64,000 bases of DNA, taken from sequence record MG592456.1, one strand, 5' to 3'. Position 1 is the first letter of the stretch; the number at the start of each line of letters is the position of its first letter. Positions 1,930 to 50,382 of this stretch are shown here, one piece after another. The position numbers and the translations under genes were made by a program. The notes under the pieces were generated by a model. That model ran no database searches. It was given only the letters and a program-made list of their open reading frames with translations, and was not told where the DNA came from.

Positions 1930-1955
1930 AAGCCACTCGATTGAGTGGCTTTTTT
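1930..1955 (+). terminator. Intrinsic terminator
   Basis: AAGCCACTC-GATT-GAGTGGCTT plus T-run. Confidence 0.85.
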
Positions 1956-1963
1956 CGGTCTCC

Positions 1964-2040
1964 GAAAAATACCGTCTCACTTTAGTAATATTAGGGACTT
2001 TAGTGTTATTAGTAATATTAGGGACTTTAGGGTTATTAGT
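1964..2040. repeat. TTAG 9-nt-period array, copy 1 (includes 2 x 27-bp tandem repeat)
   Basis: TTAG at 1982, 1991, 2000, 2009, 2018, 2027, 2036; leader GAAAAATACCGTCTCACTTTAGTA. Confidence 0.9.
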
Positions 2041-2067
2041 TTAACAAAACGCATTGTACGCTATAAT
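2039..2067 (+). promoter_or_regulatory. GTTTA-class promoter
   Basis: GTTTAA-17-TATAAT. Confidence 0.65.
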
Positions 2068-2087: not shown

Positions 2088-2327
2088 ATGATAACGATAT
2101 ACACTATCCCTAACTGTGACGGGTGTCGTCACGCTATCGCATTCTGCAAGTTTAAGAAAATCCCCTATGACGTAGTCGAGTTAACTACTCAAGACGCTGT
2201 CGACAAACTTCATGTCAAGCTTGGTCAAAACATGAATGTGCGTGTTCCACTCATCATGCATGAAGATACATTAATTGGTCATCTGCCTGAGTTAAAGAAA
2301 TGGGTTAATGACAACTTGTATAAATAA
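2088..2327 (+). CDS. Glutaredoxin (NrdH/NrdC-like)
   Basis: IYTIPNCDGC (CxxC), VPLI, thioredoxin-fold size. Confidence 0.85.
   Translation: MITIYTIPNCDGCRHAIAFCKFKKIPYDVVELTTQDAVDKLHVKLGQNMNVRVPLIMHEDTLIGHLPELKKWVNDNLYK
2319..2326 (+). promoter_or_regulatory. T4 late promoter TATAAATA
   Basis: Exact consensus upstream of gp24-like gene. Confidence 0.85.
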
Positions 2328-21943: not shown

Positions 21944-22585
21944 ATGGAATTAATGACAATTGGTATCATCGCTGGGGCTGTATTCGTAATATTAATCGGC
22001 ATTGCAATCTATCACAGTACAAAACTCCCGAATCAATCTGCCGCTGAAAAAGCGAAAGACCTAGCAGAAGTCAAACAGCGAAAGATTGCTGAAGACGCTA
22101 TTCGTCGTATGCCGACGATTCCGCCAGAGGCGATCCGAACAACTCAGCCGCATAATCGACATGCCGCCCCGCGCACTCGACGTAACAATCGAGATCAGGG
22201 TCACCATGCTAGTCGTACCAATGATATTGACGCGGTCGACGTAATGGTAGCAGGTGTTGTAGTCAATAGCTTGCTTGGTGACGATGAAATCGCAGATGAT
22301 TGGGAGCCAACTGGGTATCGCCAAGACTCAGTTGATGAACGAGTCGAGCCTGTTTGGGAGCCAACTCTATCTGGCGAAACTCCTGTTGCTGACCCTACCC
22401 CAGTTTATGAAGCGCCTGAGCCAACTCGTTCTTCATATCGTGAGCCTGAGCCGACTTACGAAGCGCCTACTTACACGCCAGAGCCGAGTTCAAGTTACAG
22501 CTCTAGTTCTAGTTACAGCTCTAGTTCAGACTACAGCTCAAGCAGTGACTACAGCTCTAGCTCTAGTTCAAGTAGCTGCGATTAA
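21944..22585 (+). CDS. Membrane-anchored protein with Pro/Glu-rich region and Ser-rich tail
   Basis: N-terminal TM; SSSYSSSSSYSSSSDYSSSSDYSSSSSSSSCD. Confidence 0.75.
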   Translation: MELMTIGIIAGAVFVILIGIAIYHSTKLPNQSAAEKAKDLAEVKQRKIAEDAIRRMPTIPPEAIRTTQPHNRHAAPRTRRNNRDQGHHASRTNDIDAVDVMVAGVVVNSLLGDDEIADDWEPTGYRQDSVDERVEPVWEPTLSGETPVADPTPVYEAPEPTRSSYREPEPTYEAPTYTPEPSSSYSSSSSYSSSSDYSSSSDYSSSSSSSSCD

Positions 22586-23480: not shown

Positions 23481-24953
23481 ATGAAAAAAAGATTTTCAGA
23501 ATTTTACGCTGAAGTTGAAGAAACTCAGATATTCGAAGTGTCAGATCGGTCAAACGTCCCCATCACATGGCACGATCCTTTGAATGCTACATTTAGTGCA
23601 GGTGGCGAGAAAGTCGCCGTTTCATTGGATGACGATCAAGATGGTGAGTTTACCATTATGTTCTCCAACAATGGGTCATATTCCCAATCCGGTCAAAGCA
23701 AAGGCGCCGCCGCGATATTCTCGGGGGTTTTGACTACTCTGCGTGAATTCACCGAAACATATGAAGAAGAAGTGGGTCTGAAGCCATATCAATACACGTT
23801 TTCAGCCGCATATGAGTTGCCGATGGGACATCCACACAAAAGGGACATCATTTCCCTGTCAGTTGGAAATTCAACGCTCAGTCTCGATGAAAAGAAAGCA
23901 GTATTCAAAGATTTGATATCCAGACCGATGTTGTATTACGCACTGTCATTGACGTTTGGTGCTTCGTATGGTTACAAGACTGACATGAACGACATCTATT
24001 TACTGAAACTAGCGGGTGGTGCTAATGATTTTCGTTCAGTTCGTCGCAATGTAAACAAATCGATTGCTGACCTGTCTGAAGACCAAATGGACCGCCTGTT
24101 TGTTAGTATGAAGGGTTCAGTTCATTTCAAATTGACGAATGCAAGTACAAGCAGTAGCGACTACGACGGTGCTTATATGGATAGTGAACTCAGCCTTGAA
24201 GACAATATCGACGATGCGAGTGATGAACAGCTAGAAGATTGGATCAACGCTGGACGCGAAGCCGATATCATTGAATATGCTGGCTGGCAAACACTTGTTA
24301 GGATTGCTGGCATGGAATATATGCATAGTAATTTAATAACCCATTCTGACAAAGACGTCCGTGACGCAGTAATCCAATCAGATCCCGACATGGTAGATGA
24401 ACTGATTGATTCAGAACACCCAGAAATGCGTGCTCATGCTGCTGAGTACGGTGCGGGTATTGAGAAACTAATCACTGATGACGAAGAAGAAGTTCGTGAC
24501 GCTGCGTGGGACTACGCAACTGAGAACTATGACTTCGATCAACGCATACCGCTGATGAAGTACGTAATTCGTAACGGCGATGAAGAACAAATCGACGCGA
24601 TGGCTGAGTGGGTGATCGACTACGGTCATTGGCAAGAGCGTTTATTCCTTGCAGAAGAAGGTCGAAACATAGAGAAATTGATGATTGACGCATCGGAAGA
24701 AGTTCGTCAAGGTGCTATCAACTCGGTGTTTAGTCAAATGGGGTTTGAGGGCGAAGAAGCCGCTAGCTATATTTCTGATGTGTCGGCTAATACCGACTAC
24801 AGTCAGGAAAACTTTGAATACGCGATGGAAGGCAACTTCGGGTCGGACTTCGAAGATAAGCTGCTTGAACTTGCACGAGACGAAATGCTTGACGTTAGCA
24901 AGTACTCACCCGACGAAGATGAAGACGAAGATGAAGACGACATATATTCGTAA
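23481..24953 (+). CDS. Acidic protein: CTS-like N-terminus, paralogous domain, HEAT-like C-terminal repeats (start re-assigned)
   Basis: MKKRFSEFYAE; repeats such as LIDSEHPEMRAHA, LITDDEEEVRDAA, LMIDASEEVRQGA; AGGA RBS. Confidence 0.75.
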   Translation: MKKRFSEFYAEVEETQIFEVSDRSNVPITWHDPLNATFSAGGEKVAVSLDDDQDGEFTIMFSNNGSYSQSGQSKGAAAIFSGVLTTLREFTETYEEEVGLKPYQYTFSAAYELPMGHPHKRDIISLSVGNSTLSLDEKKAVFKDLISRPMLYYALSLTFGASYGYKTDMNDIYLLKLAGGANDFRSVRRNVNKSIADLSEDQMDRLFVSMKGSVHFKLTNASTSSSDYDGAYMDSELSLEDNIDDASDEQLEDWINAGREADIIEYAGWQTLVRIAGMEYMHSNLITHSDKDVRDAVIQSDPDMVDELIDSEHPEMRAHAAEYGAGIEKLITDDEEEVRDAAWDYATENYDFDQRIPLMKYVIRNGDEEQIDAMAEWVIDYGHWQERLFLAEEGRNIEKLMIDASEEVRQGAINSVFSQMGFEGEEAASYISDVSANTDYSQENFEYAMEGNFGSDFEDKLLELARDEMLDVSKYSPDEDEDEDEDDIYS

Positions 24954-35951: not shown

Positions 35952-36118
35952 TGAAGAACGAGCAATGTTGCAGCAGAAATTGTGACAACACGGTAGACGT
36001 CCCTGATGATTTTGAATTTCAGGGATGTTGCTCTGGGTTTGAATGTGGGTGTATGGGAATGATGATCAATCCCGTATTCTGTGATGAATGTATTAAACAA
36101 TACGAAGGAACCGCATGA
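35951..36118 (+). CDS. 55-aa Cys-rich microprotein (9 Cys; not in ORF track)
   Basis: MKNEQCCSRNCDNTVDVPDDFEFQGCCSGFECGCMGMMINPVFCDECIKQYEGTA; TAATG and ATGA overlaps. Confidence 0.75.
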   Translation: MKNEQCCSRNCDNTVDVPDDFEFQGCCSGFECGCMGMMINPVFCDECIKQYEGTA

Positions 36119-37671
36119 TTATTGAATATGTTATGTCTGCTACGGGTCATGCTCGTATTGGCGCGGCACACAAGCTAATGAACGTAGTAGATACCAAGTA
36201 TCTTAGAGACGTTCTAGACGCAGCGCAAGACATGGACGGCGTTCACAAGATCAGTATGCTTTATAACGCCTACACTGAGAAAAAGGTTGGTATTCAAATC
36301 AACGAATTGTTCGGTGATAGCGTATATAAAGTTCATGTTGACTCGGGTGGACTGCAAATCGTCAACTTAGGTTTAGAGAACACACCAGAGTTACGTCAGG
36401 CTGTCTACGAAAATCAGGCAGCGTCTGGTGACATTGGGATGTGTTTCGACGAAATCCCGCTTCATAATGAAGCAAAGGGTGGTGGTTCAGCTCGTATCAA
36501 CACCAAAGATAAAGTGTTCATGTACGATCTCGCGTTCGAGTACGGACGTAAGACGGGTCAGAACATTCGCGCTCAAATCGAAACATACATCGCGACTAAG
36601 AGTGAGTGCAAACCGTATATCATTTTGCAAGGCAACTCTGATGACGATTTCATTGCATTCAGTGATGGGATTATGTCTGAACTCAATGGGTTAGAAGACT
36701 ATATTGCGGGTTGTGCTGCTGCCGATACATGTATTGGGAATGGTGTTCGCGAATCTATTGACATGATGTCAGTAATTCGCAAGCTGAACATACCAGAAAA
36801 GGCAAAGAAATCAGTGCATTTACTGGGTGTTGGGTCAGTTAAACGTCTCTTGCCGGCTGTTGCGCTCGTGCGTAGTGGTTATTTTGGTGAAGATTTCCAT
36901 ATGAGCTATGATTCGTCAACTCATACGGGTTGTTTAACCAATCGCGAATACACTGATAAGCTAGGTCGCCGTAAGAAGATTTCAGGTCATGGTATTATGC
37001 GCAATGGCATTAAACAGCCATCGCGTGAATTAGATGAAATGCTCGACGAAGTATGGGGACGATTTGGTCACGTATTGCCACGTTCTAAGGTTGAGTTCAA
37101 AGAGTTCGCAACTCGATTGTGGTTGAAGGACTTAGACAAAGAAACGATGACTGATGACGATATTGTGTTTGAAGTTGCGTGTAACTTGTGTATAATCTTA
37201 TCTCAAGTCAACAACTTCCAATCGATTATCTCTGAAACATTCGATTTGAACACCCCAAAGGCAGTTGATTTATCAGCATTCTTTGGAAACGCGGTTGAAG
37301 CTAAAGAATCCCAAGAAGGGTTCAAGAAATGGTCAGCGATTCGTCGTCTTGATGTTCTTGACAAGCTGCTTGATATTGACACAGTTGAAGGTTACAATCG
37401 CTGGCATACGAGTTATGTTGATCGACTACCGTCAATGCGTATTCGTCGCGGCTTAACAACCGATTTCCCTGCGTTTAAAGTCGCAGAGAAAGACGTTGTT
37501 GAAGACGTTGTTGAAGACGTTGTTGAAGACGTTGTTGAAGACGTTGACGCTATCAAATATAAGCTCAAGTTGAAAATACTAGAGTTTAAGCAACTGCATG
37601 GTAGTAACATGGTAGAAAAGAAAGCTACTGTATTAGCCGAAATCAATGAGCTGAAAGCAAAATTAGGGTAA
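36115..37671 (+). CDS. dpdA: TGT-fold 7-deazaguanine DNA transglycosylase (DpdA-like)
   Basis: VDSGG, MCFDEIP, ILQG, HLLGVG, SYDSS in TGT order; locus context. Confidence 0.75.
   Translation: MIIEYVMSATGHARIGAAHKLMNVVDTKYLRDVLDAAQDMDGVHKISMLYNAYTEKKVGIQINELFGDSVYKVHVDSGGLQIVNLGLENTPELRQAVYENQAASGDIGMCFDEIPLHNEAKGGGSARINTKDKVFMYDLAFEYGRKTGQNIRAQIETYIATKSECKPYIILQGNSDDDFIAFSDGIMSELNGLEDYIAGCAAADTCIGNGVRESIDMMSVIRKLNIPEKAKKSVHLLGVGSVKRLLPAVALVRSGYFGEDFHMSYDSSTHTGCLTNREYTDKLGRRKKISGHGIMRNGIKQPSRELDEMLDEVWGRFGHVLPRSKVEFKEFATRLWLKDLDKETMTDDDIVFEVACNLCIILSQVNNFQSIISETFDLNTPKAVDLSAFFGNAVEAKESQEGFKKWSAIRRLDVLDKLLDIDTVEGYNRWHTSYVDRLPSMRIRRGLTTDFPAFKVAEKDVVEDVVEDVVEDVVEDVDAIKYKLKLKILEFKQLHGSNMVEKKATVLAEINELKAKLG
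37490..37546 (+). repeat. In-frame 12-bp tandem repeat (AAGACGTTGTTG x4.75) encoding (DVVE)n
   Basis: Direct reading. Confidence 0.9.
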
Positions 37672-44140: not shown

Positions 44141-44227
44141 TGACTAAAGAACAAGAAGATTTCTTGCGGCTCATGAATAAAATGCAAGAGTACCGAGATA
44201 TCGCAAAAACATTGGTTTAAAATGATG

Positions 44228-44257
44228 AAAAGGGTTGACATTAGTCAGCCCTTTTTT
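44228..44257 (+). terminator. Intrinsic terminator
   Basis: AAAAGGGTTGAC-ATTA-GTCAGCCC-T6-GTGTCTG. Confidence 0.85.
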
Positions 44258-44303
44258 GTGTCTGGAGGAAAATCAAGCGAAGCGGCAGGATCTGTCTGTG
44301 GCG

Positions 44304-44370
44304 GAAAAATTCCGTCTCATCTTAGTAGAATTAGTGATTTTAATGGTATTAGAGAAATTAGAAATATTAG
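44304..44370. repeat. TTAG 9-nt-period array, copy 2
   Basis: Leader GAAAAATTCCGTCTCATCTTAGTA; TTAG at 44322, 44331, (TTAA 44340), 44349, 44358, 44367. Confidence 0.85.
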
Positions 44371-44386
44371 AGAAAATGATTTTTTG

Positions 44387-44415
44387 TTGACTTGTGATTG
44401 ATTGTCGTTTATCAT
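44387..44415 (+). promoter_or_regulatory. sigma70 early promoter
   Basis: TTGACT-17-TATCAT. Confidence 0.8.
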
Positions 44416-44444: not shown

Positions 44445-44972
44445 ATGAGTAGTATTAAACAACTTGAAATTGAACTAGCTGATATGCATATGGAGTCGGT
44501 AGATGACTATGATTGTGCCGTAACCGTATCTTGTAAAGGTATGAGCCGAACATACACAGTCGACGTACTATCCTTTGAACAGTTCATCAACTTGAACGAT
44601 GATGCTGAGTATTGTGCTTTTGAATGGCATGGTATTCATGAGTCGTTGCATGATGAAGAGCTTGATTTCCGCGCAATCAACGAATGGGCATCACTTGACG
44701 ACGACGAACGCGAAGTCGTTGAAGCACTGATGGATCATAACGTCTGTATGAGTGTTGAAGATGCAGTCGAGAAGATGTCTGATGTTCAGTTGTTCACTGG
44801 CTCGAAAGAAGCATATGCTCAAGATCAGTTTGAAACTAGTGGTATCCTCATAGCCGACCTGCCGTATATGGTCAGACATAACATCGACTGGGATGCGGTA
44901 TACGACGACTTAGAAGCTAGCGAACACATCATTGAACTTGCGAATAACCGTCGACTAACGGTGATTGGATGA
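44445..44972 (+). CDS. ardA: ArdA-like antirestriction (acidic DNA mimic) protein
   Basis: Very acidic; EWHG, INEW..LDDDERE.VEAL, LP..V..NIDWDAV..DL resembles ArdA C-terminus. Confidence 0.6.
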   Translation: MSSIKQLEIELADMHMESVDDYDCAVTVSCKGMSRTYTVDVLSFEQFINLNDDAEYCAFEWHGIHESLHDEELDFRAINEWASLDDDEREVVEALMDHNVCMSVEDAVEKMSDVQLFTGSKEAYAQDQFETSGILIADLPYMVRHNIDWDAVYDDLEASEHIIELANNRRLTVIG

Positions 44973-49851: not shown

Positions 49852-50382
49852 ATGACAGCAACAGAGCAACGTAGAGCTAATAGAGCGAACAAAACGGCTG
49901 AGACATACAATCACCTTCAACGTCAGTATATCGCTATGAAAGAGCGTTGTGCAGAGCTTGAAGCACAGCTTGAAGCACAGCTTGAAGCACAGTCTGAGTT
50001 CAGCCCATCGACATTCGACATCAACTTGCTTGATAGTGATGATCCACGTGTGCATATTCAAATGCTGCGCACTCTTATGGAAGAAAATCGTGAATTGCAA
50101 TCTACAATTGCCTATGAAGGTGTCGTTGAAGCGCATCATCAGACACTAATTGCCCAATTAAAGGCTGAGGTGAAATCGCAGAAGGCAGACCATGAGTTTT
50201 GGTTTGATGCTTACACGCGCTATCGTGAGAAAACAGATAGGTTGGAAAGTATTGAAAAGATCCTGACGCGACGTTGTTACGAACTGCAATCAGACGTTGA
50301 GGCGAACAACACCAAGAACATCTTTGGTGCGCTTGTTGCTTCTAGCATAACTGCTGTTGTAATGTTCTTTATTATGAAATAA
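49852..50382 (+). CDS. Coiled-coil protein with C-terminal TM (start re-assigned)
   Basis: GAGAACAATATTATG; AGCTTGAAGCAC x3 at 49955-49990. Confidence 0.7.
   Translation: MTATEQRRANRANKTAETYNHLQRQYIAMKERCAELEAQLEAQLEAQSEFSPSTFDINLLDSDDPRVHIQMLRTLMEENRELQSTIAYEGVVEAHHQTLIAQLKAEVKSQKADHEFWFDAYTRYREKTDRLESIEKILTRRCYELQSDVEANNTKNIFGALVASSITAVVMFFIMK

Follow-up and report, generated by a model that had tools for sequence, protein, structure and literature searches.

A phased TTAG array preceded by a long conserved box: an oriented cis-element at six syntenic sites of KVP40-like vibriophage genomes

What would read a run of seven TTAG tetranucleotides kept in perfect 9-nt register between two phage genes, and for what? 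The question is raised by an array near the start of the stretch of DNA analyzed here (the window, 64,000 nucleotides of record MG592456.1), which comes from Vibrio phage 1.081.O._10N.286.52.C2, a KVP40-like T4-type myovirus of the genus Schizotequatrovirus whose record comprises 239,318 bp. Window coordinates equal record coordinates minus 62,000, and the whole genome was rebuilt from the record for the copy search. The array belongs to a cis-element, conserved and oriented, that measures about 75-130 bp and occupies six syntenic sites per KVP40-like vibriophage genome.

The two copies in the window

In the first copy, which lies between a SprT-like gene and a glutaredoxin gene, the TTAG tetranucleotides start at positions 1982, 1991, 2000, 2009, 2018, 2027 and 2036, in the exact 9-nt steps described for them originally. 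No run of four TTAG was found in the dinucleotide-shuffled window, and after shuffling of the whole genome, runs of three or more averaged 0.03. The leader was likewise confirmed at 1964-1987, as was the location of the array between a terminator and a promoter-like site (Table 1). The terminator combines a 9-pair stem with a T tail according to the scan, and its RNA folds at -14.4 kcal/mol (z -5.1). The promoter-like site, recognized by eye, was not called by the promoter scan because its spacer is short; the orthologous sites of KVP40 and VH7D carry TTTAAC or TTAACA, a spacer of 16-17 nt and TATAAT. Tandem Repeats Finder describes the array as 2.2 repeats of a 27-nt unit with a 96% match, implying that three units were duplicated recently. 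The downstream gene scored 22.1 bits against the Pfam Glutaredoxin profile, slightly below the cut-off, and according to the annotation it opens a unit that runs on into head-vertex and gp55-like genes.

The second copy, claimed to lie about 42 kb away, was recovered at 44303-44375, with its leader at 44304-44327 (3 mismatches). Its upstream neighbor is NVP1081O_147. The downstream neighbor, NVP1081O_148, scored 22.5 bits against the Pfam ArdA (antirestriction) profile, below the cut-off of 27, and this weakly ArdA-like gene may form an early anti-restriction unit with the Dam-type methylase gene that comes after it. At what seems to be the same site, phage F86 carries TTGACA-17-TAGAAT at an equal distance from the array.

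Table 1. Features of the two copies in the window, and sites of the element in the genome (record positions where indicated).
Feature	Position	Strand	Basis or context
Intrinsic terminator of SprT-like gene	1930..1956	+	stem-loop 1930-1951 plus T run
Diverged 19-nt box CGAAAAATACCGTCTCACT	1963..1981	+	alignment with 22 other copies; consensus GGAAAAATTCCGTCTCATC
Seven TTAG-N5 units	1982..2044	+	27-nt unit x 2.2
Promoter-like site TTAACA-15-TATAAT	2041..2067	+	by eye; -35 overlaps final array unit
Glutaredoxin (NrdH-like) gene	2088..2327	+	annotation; downstream of copy 1
Intrinsic terminator	44227..44257 (about)	+	RNA fold -18.4 kcal/mol, z -5.9
GCGAAGCG box	44277..44284	+	alignment of 23 copies
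19-nt box GGAAAAATTCCGTCTCATC	44303..44321	+	contains dyad GGAA-N3-TTCC
Six 9-nt units	44322..44375	+	third unit is TTAA
Sigma-70-type promoter TTGACT-17-TATCAT	44387..44415	+	10/12 consensus positions
NVP1081O_148	44445..44972	+	annotation; downstream of copy 2, then Dam-type methylase
Site 21.0 kb	record	-	tail-fibre gene, then uvsY
Site 64.0 kb	record	+	copy 1 (SprT-like gene, then glutaredoxin)
Site 106.3 kb	record	+	copy 2
Site 152.5 kb	record	+	gene 251, then lipoprotein gene
Site 207.2 + 207.3 kb, tandem pair	record	-	gp3-like gene, then gene 1-like dNMP kinase
Site 233.7 kb	record	+	short tail fibre gene, then wac

Copies across the genome and in related phages

The element had been described as having two copies, whereas the whole genome holds seven at six sites and relatives about six each. 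The search of the genome and its relatives that the original prediction had proposed uncovered a syntenic family: BLAST with copy 2 hit 291 places, about six per genome, spread over 51 related records that all belong to Vibrio phages, and gave no match elsewhere. Absence from relatives, which had been held to speak against the element, was not observed, as it was present in all those found. From the roughly 291 places, 22 distinct copies were read. Those in KVP40, VH7D, nt-1, QD01, VS2, K566, D480, F86 and two metagenome contigs adjoin the same genes, and each copy read is co-directed with its neighboring genes; the coordinates of all six sites are known for one genome only. Exact-pattern scans of IMG/VR and metagenomes added only KVP40, VH7D and two contigs. 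In a generic scan of IMG/VR for (TTAG-N5)x5, most arrays came from other contigs, many of which were giant-virus bins. A host-derived element was discarded, since the box gave 16 scattered matches in bacterial genomes, in unrelated taxa and none in Vibrio.

At the junction of the gp3-like gene with the gene 1-like dNMP kinase gene (named from the K566 annotation), a tandem duplication was observed (record 207122-207360, minus strand), in which the first five units of both arrays are 100% identical; QD01, VS2 and K566 have a single copy there.

The anatomy of the element was derived from the 22 distinct copies, with 23 copies taken for the box alignment. Five of the six site types carry a GCGAAGCG box, sometimes GCGTCAGCG, which precedes the 19-nt box by 15-19 nt, with a linker between them that varies in both length and sequence; at the glutaredoxin site this upstream part is missing. 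The 19-nt box, usually preceded by GAGGC, is identical in 17 of the 23 copies and differs by TC to CA alone in 5 more. Copy 1, the most diverged member of the family, has four differences (4 mismatches over a 23-nt query made of the box and the first TTAG). The box is conserved as sequence rather than as structure. The TTAG-N5 units that follow number 5 in six copies, 6 in thirteen and 7 in three, and no slip of the 9-nt register was found. TTAG is constant across 129 units, with at least 1.9 bits at each of the four positions.

The spacers, which had been said to vary, in fact follow a W-R-D-W-A pattern and hardly differ from site to site within a genome. Position 5 of the unit is T, A or G, a purine occupies position 6, and A or T occupies positions 8 and 9, whereas C is almost excluded (18 of 645 spacer positions, versus 136 for G). 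Both the variable spacers and the two copies were artefacts of having seen a single window and compared the most diverged copy. With the exception of copy 1, arrays at different sites of the source genome are 89-100% identical, whereas identity falls to 71-76% when arrays of the source phage are compared with their orthologues in KVP40 or VH7D. This high identity within and lower identity between genomes implies concerted evolution, which fits either gene conversion or arrays that co-evolve with a single trans-acting factor. Taken together, the register, the TTAG, the usual six units and the long box indicate a cis-site for an oligomeric factor that would nucleate on the box. The earlier idea of a multimer reading the TTAG register agrees with the constancy of the tetranucleotide, the unslipping register and the 5-7 units, the reader itself being putative.

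The transcriptional context differs between sites. At the lipoprotein site, which has no terminator and no promoter (the latter in four phages), the element occupies the entire gap between two co-oriented genes in four phages, overlaps the upstream stop codon, and ends in units that carry a Shine-Dalgarno sequence, TTAGGAGTA, and themselves abut ATG or GTG (four phages); with this layout the array must be transcribed and lie in the mRNA. Most other copies read are preceded by a terminator (stem-loop plus T run), and a majority of the copies read have a sigma-70-type promoter 1-24 nt past the array. The uvsY promoter (TTTACA-N17-TATACT) keeps its hexamers in three phages while its spacer varies, so the main downstream mRNA there would not contain the array; the phase of its -35 relative to the array is constant in three phages. 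The gene 1 promoter (TTTAGA-N17-TATAAT; record 207046-207110, minus strand) is conserved in QD01, VS2 and K566, and the source phage has only a late promoter at the wac site. A promoter upstream of dsbA, TTTAGA-N16-TATAAT, also has TTTAGA as its -35.

Several simpler identities were tried and discarded. A structured RNA is contradicted by folding like that of shuffled sequence (z -0.3 to -0.4); Rfam gave zero matches at the gathering score in the whole window, with only chance-level similarity around copy 2 (E at least 0.1), and a 9-bp hairpin of GAGGCGGAA and TTCCGTCTC, formable in 90% of cases, shows no compensatory changes. A protein-coding sequence is contradicted by the variable linker of 15-19 nt, by TAG at every third codon in one frame and by the fixed third position of TTA. 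TTAG as a general -35 or activator box was discarded, there being no enrichment 21-23 nt upstream of TATAAT genome-wide; TTAG-N5-TTAG pairs outside the elements number 14 versus about 6 expected and are unclustered. An antisense Rho-utilization site would place YC before the opposite-strand CUAA, which occurs in only about 37% of units. As a T7-type promoter, with the G of TTAG as +1, the box agrees by eye with the T7 consensus at 11 of 18 positions, and no phage RNA polymerase was found; a single-subunit enzyme was seen neither among window ORFs of at least 550 aa nor in the annotation parts examined. A target of 7-deazaguanine insertion was also discarded, since the DpdA2 of VH7D modifies plasmids at 2765 per million nucleotides and is thus not array-specific. 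The modification reported for relatives, 35-348 per million nucleotides (PMC6884629, PMC10516641), corresponds by our own arithmetic to roughly 20-170 per genome, the order of the TTAG unit number.

Other repeats and unusual annotations were noted in the record. A 12-nt tandem repeat, AAGACGTTGTTG, perfect over 4.8 copies (window 37490-37546), codes for (EDVV)n close to the C-terminus of a 518-aa protein (36115-37671). This protein has no Pfam match; its DSGGLQ motif recalls tRNA-guanine transglycosylases, and it could be the DpdA2 DNA transglycosylase of the clade. Further short repeats in tandem, recurring every 12 or 18 nt (window 22487-22568, 24912-24940 and 49951-49992), are probably coding. 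Likewise, the "CRISPR spacers" annotated in the tail sheath stabiliser gene (record 238315-238508) have a regular 42-nt spacing, which points to a coding repeat that was mistaken for a CRISPR array. In the tRNA cluster (record 204552-205037), two overlong calls, a tRNA-Asn of 121 nt and a "tRNA-OTHER" of 119 nt with an anticodon left undetermined in the annotation, may reflect introns or miscalls.

Candidate functions of the element

Ranked first, at a probability of roughly 0.35 and hence tentatively, is a replication-origin-type assembly module, for which we infer protein binding, strand opening and replication initiation. A sequence-specific factor would nucleate on the near-invariant 19-nt box, and an oligomer of about six subunits would read one TTAG per 9 nt along the AT-rich, easily melted tract, opening the duplex. 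The upstream terminator would shield the site from incoming RNA polymerase, and the early-type promoter, firing outward, would send negative supercoils into the array according to the twin-domain model; transcriptional activation is known for other origins.

The arrays are 72-80% AT, and of all 54-bp windows in the genome they fall within the least stable 0.04-0.4% (copy 1 within the least stable 0.4%, copy 2 within 0.05%). In the circularly permuted genome the gaps between the six sites are 43.0, 42.3, 46.2, 54.7, 26.5 and 26.5 kb, where the wrap-around gap could be a few kb larger, as MG592456.1 is labelled a partial genome. Compared with six random points this spacing is even (P 0.004 when judged by the smallest gap and 0.0035 by the coefficient of variation, in a test run after the positions were seen). 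It counts as a single observation, because synteny is common to the clade, and suggests a genome-scale rather than a gene-specific role. In addition, one copy lies directly upstream of, and co-oriented with, uvsY (NVP1081O_026, 39% identical to T4 UvsY), and T4 oriF is annotated at the equivalent position, upstream of uvsY. The occurrence of the element at sites without a sigma-70 promoter (the lipoprotein site in four phages and the wac site of the source phage) also supports an origin. The original proposal of an origin or unwinding element thus gains circumstantial support from low stability, even spacing and the uvsY site, and loses the two forms in which it had been cast. "TAG trios" do not fit a period of 9 nt instead of 3, with the second and third triplets of the unit variable, and for "primase-type triplets" the conservation was not seen. 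The DnaA trios of bacterial origins, contiguous 3-nt repeats next to a DnaA box, likewise present TAG or TAA triplets along a single strand of the region to be unwound; the element differs from them in its period of 9 and in having no more than the first triplet of each unit fixed.

The origins of T4, at least five in number, share no common motif; minimal ones span about 100 bp with a promoter and an AT-rich unwinding element, and oriF and oriG need the promoter upstream of that element (PMC3016281). Like oriF and oriG, the vibriophage element is a module of about 100 bp with an AT-rich, unwindable tract beside a promoter, present several times per genome and once before uvsY, and its arrays have the roughly 50 bp of AT-rich sequence that characterize their unwinding element. 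By contrast, oriF and oriG have a MotA-box middle promoter and no phased repeat (the T4 uvsY promoter region contains a MotA box and lacks a TTAG array), whereas the vibriophage copies share one sequence. The TGCTT box that marks the oriF/oriG promoter is absent from the 19-nt box and array. The order of parts speaks against an origin, since the recognizable promoter here lies downstream of the tract rather than upstream. The strict conservation, too, is not obviously expected of origins, because T4 origin replication is dispensable after the first rounds, and the co-orientation with genes is explained at least equally well by a role linked to transcription. Nor do repeat-based origins provide a close parallel. 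Classical iterons, of the plasmid or lambda type, are of about 17-22 bp, helix-phased and bound by a Rep protein whose gene lies nearby, so that 9-bp units with a 9-bp period, beside which no rep gene is annotated, are unlike them and count against an origin. For T4 oriE, an origin dependent on an early promoter, evenly spaced 12-nt "iterons" have been described (PMC3016281). In the T4 record (79,402-79,569) these repeats recur every 24 nt (GTTGAAGGTAAT...), and the annotated reading frame of gene 5 encloses them completely, which makes them a poor analogue of the TTAG arrays, which are intergenic, non-coding and multi-copy. The oriE repeats may, we assume, reflect the beta-helix repeats of gp5 rather than initiator sites.

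Next in rank, and possible though doubtful, is a DNA operator or enhancer array, in which a DNA-binding protein of phage or host would nucleate on the box and spread over the TTAG subsites toward the gene, where it would occlude or activate the adjacent early-type promoter or, at promoterless sites, block read-through. All copies read face the downstream gene, and in most of them the sigma-70-type promoter just beyond the array (uvsY, gene 1, copy 2), the -35 overlapping the last unit at the nrdH-like site and the fixed -35 phase at uvsY in three phages are what such a function would predict. A 4-bp box at a fixed period of 7-9 bp is also typical of operator arrays, among which we would compare ribbon-helix-helix operators and mycobacteriophage stoperators. 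Ribbon-helix-helix operator or centromere arrays (omega heptads, ParG ACTC boxes, MetJ metboxes) consist of boxes of 4-7 bp with a 7-9 bp period near promoters, and like the element they are short, head-to-tail and of fixed period out of phase with B-DNA; they differ from it in that its spacers hold far more G than C and that a long invariant box is added on one flank. However, an operator would not be expected where the promoter is absent, as at the lipoprotein site, or solely of the late type, as at wac in the source phage; the distance from array to -35 ranges over 1-24 nt across sites, TTAG is unused as a box at other promoters, and even genome spacing is unexpected for a small regulon.

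Third, and unlikely, the element could be a MotA-independent middle-type promoter, with the box as its upstream half and the array as the first transcribed region, serving as a 5' leader or, as in T4 oriF, as an R-loop-forming unwinding element. The center of the dyad would then lie about 30 nt upstream of a start deduced from a TAGWAT -10-like hexamer at the first unit. KVP40 and nt-1 have AsiA and no recognizable MotA, and a functional analogue has been proposed (PMC2988021); a promoter of this kind is attractive for a clade so equipped. The conserved block of about 33 nt has the length of a promoter, and TA occupies hexamer positions 1-2 in 18 of the 22 distinct copies. In the sequence the dyad is centered 18 nt upstream of the TAGWAT-like hexamer, a distance that presumably recalls middle-promoter geometry. 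Such a promoter would provide the one that is lacking at the lipoprotein site, and most copies read follow a terminator, as do the promoters of the promoter-terminator cassettes (PMC4122927). On the other hand, neither a -35 nor a TGCTT box is present, position 3 of the hexamer (G) is better conserved than position 2, unlike in a -10 element, and the remaining 4 of the 22 copies, including the lipoprotein copy of the source phage, do not have the key A at position 2, which weakens the case. A combination in which the box would be the equivalent of the MotA box and the element both a middle promoter and an oriF-like origin, with the transcript entering the TTAG tract and an oligomer of about six subunits on the displaced strand, seems to us just as unlikely.

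Less probable again is a site of genome architecture, that is, phased binding for a nucleoid, topoisomerase, condensation or packaging factor or for sliding-clamp loading. The six evenly spaced sites, their syntenic positions in the relatives read and the mixture of neighbors (genes of early type with sigma-70-type promoters, the late gene wac and genes without assigned function) would all suit it. The strict co-orientation with transcription would be unneeded, however, and T4-type phages package by the headful, with no pac site.

We consider it improbable that the element acts as an operator at the RNA level, where a ring-shaped protein would read UUAG every 9 nt in the transcript and control either translation or the fate of the mRNA. 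The lipoprotein site is the one place where transcription of the array is certain; there it is in the mRNA and carries the ribosome-binding site, and the array is almost free of C, unstructured (z about -0.3) and usually of six units. TRAP and HutP bind (G/U)AG and UAG repeats, respectively, with spacers of 2-4 nt in a transcribed leader, and resemble the situation here in the UAG repeats, in the unstructured tract of about 50 nt suiting a ring oligomer and in the one copy over a ribosome-binding site; the element departs from such sites in its spacing of 6 nt instead of 2-4 and in the location of most copies outside the main mRNA. Most other copies read lie between a strong terminator and a promoter, so that the main downstream mRNA would not contain the array, which stands 45-110 nt from the start codon at these sites; neither an Rfam match nor covariation was found.

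A functionless repeat whose similarity is kept by gene conversion among PeSL-like cassettes is very improbable: concerted evolution within the genome, the tandem duplication at the gene 1 site and the location of most copies read in terminator-promoter junctions like those of PeSLs would follow from it, whereas box and TTAG do not change between genomes that share only about 75% identity in their conserved genes, the sites are syntenic in the relatives read, and the element is kept in the cramped lipoprotein gap, overlapping a stop codon and a ribosome-binding site.

The cassettes themselves are among the nearest known systems. In PeSL/PmSL cassettes of T4-type phages a stem-loop terminator leads directly into an AT-rich region, after which come an early promoter, a Shine-Dalgarno sequence and a start codon (PMC4122927). 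They resemble the element (Arbiol 2010; Comeau 2014) in placing an early-type promoter, with the Shine-Dalgarno sequence and start codon after it, behind a stem-loop terminator, in recurring within the genome and in being likely substrates of recombination. For nt-1 and KVP40 the part of the description at hand (PMC4122927) gives only an AT-rich region and mentions neither the invariant box nor the TTAG array. Unlike PeSL/PmSL cassettes, the element is also found at the lipoprotein site, without terminator or promoter.

Novelty and meaning for the clade

Judged by its sequence organization, the element most likely belongs with phased-repeat protein-assembly sites. It is apparently undescribed so far: no description was found in the searchable literature, outside which an earlier one may exist, the box sequence had no match in searchable papers, and a recent paper on Schizotequatrovirus genomics makes no mention of repeats or intergenic elements.

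Among large T4-type vibriophages the KVP40-like phages serve as the reference, and phage work in aquaculture makes use of them. The element offers a concrete handle on the replication origins of this clade and on its middle transcription with AsiA and without MotA (PMC2988021). If they act as origins, the sites would give a T4-type phage its first motif-defined origin set, and if they are operators or promoters, they would represent a new regulatory class for the clade. Should the box be an equivalent of the MotA box with an origin role, the six sites would constitute a multi-origin system of a T4-type phage that is defined by its sequence and evenly spaced.
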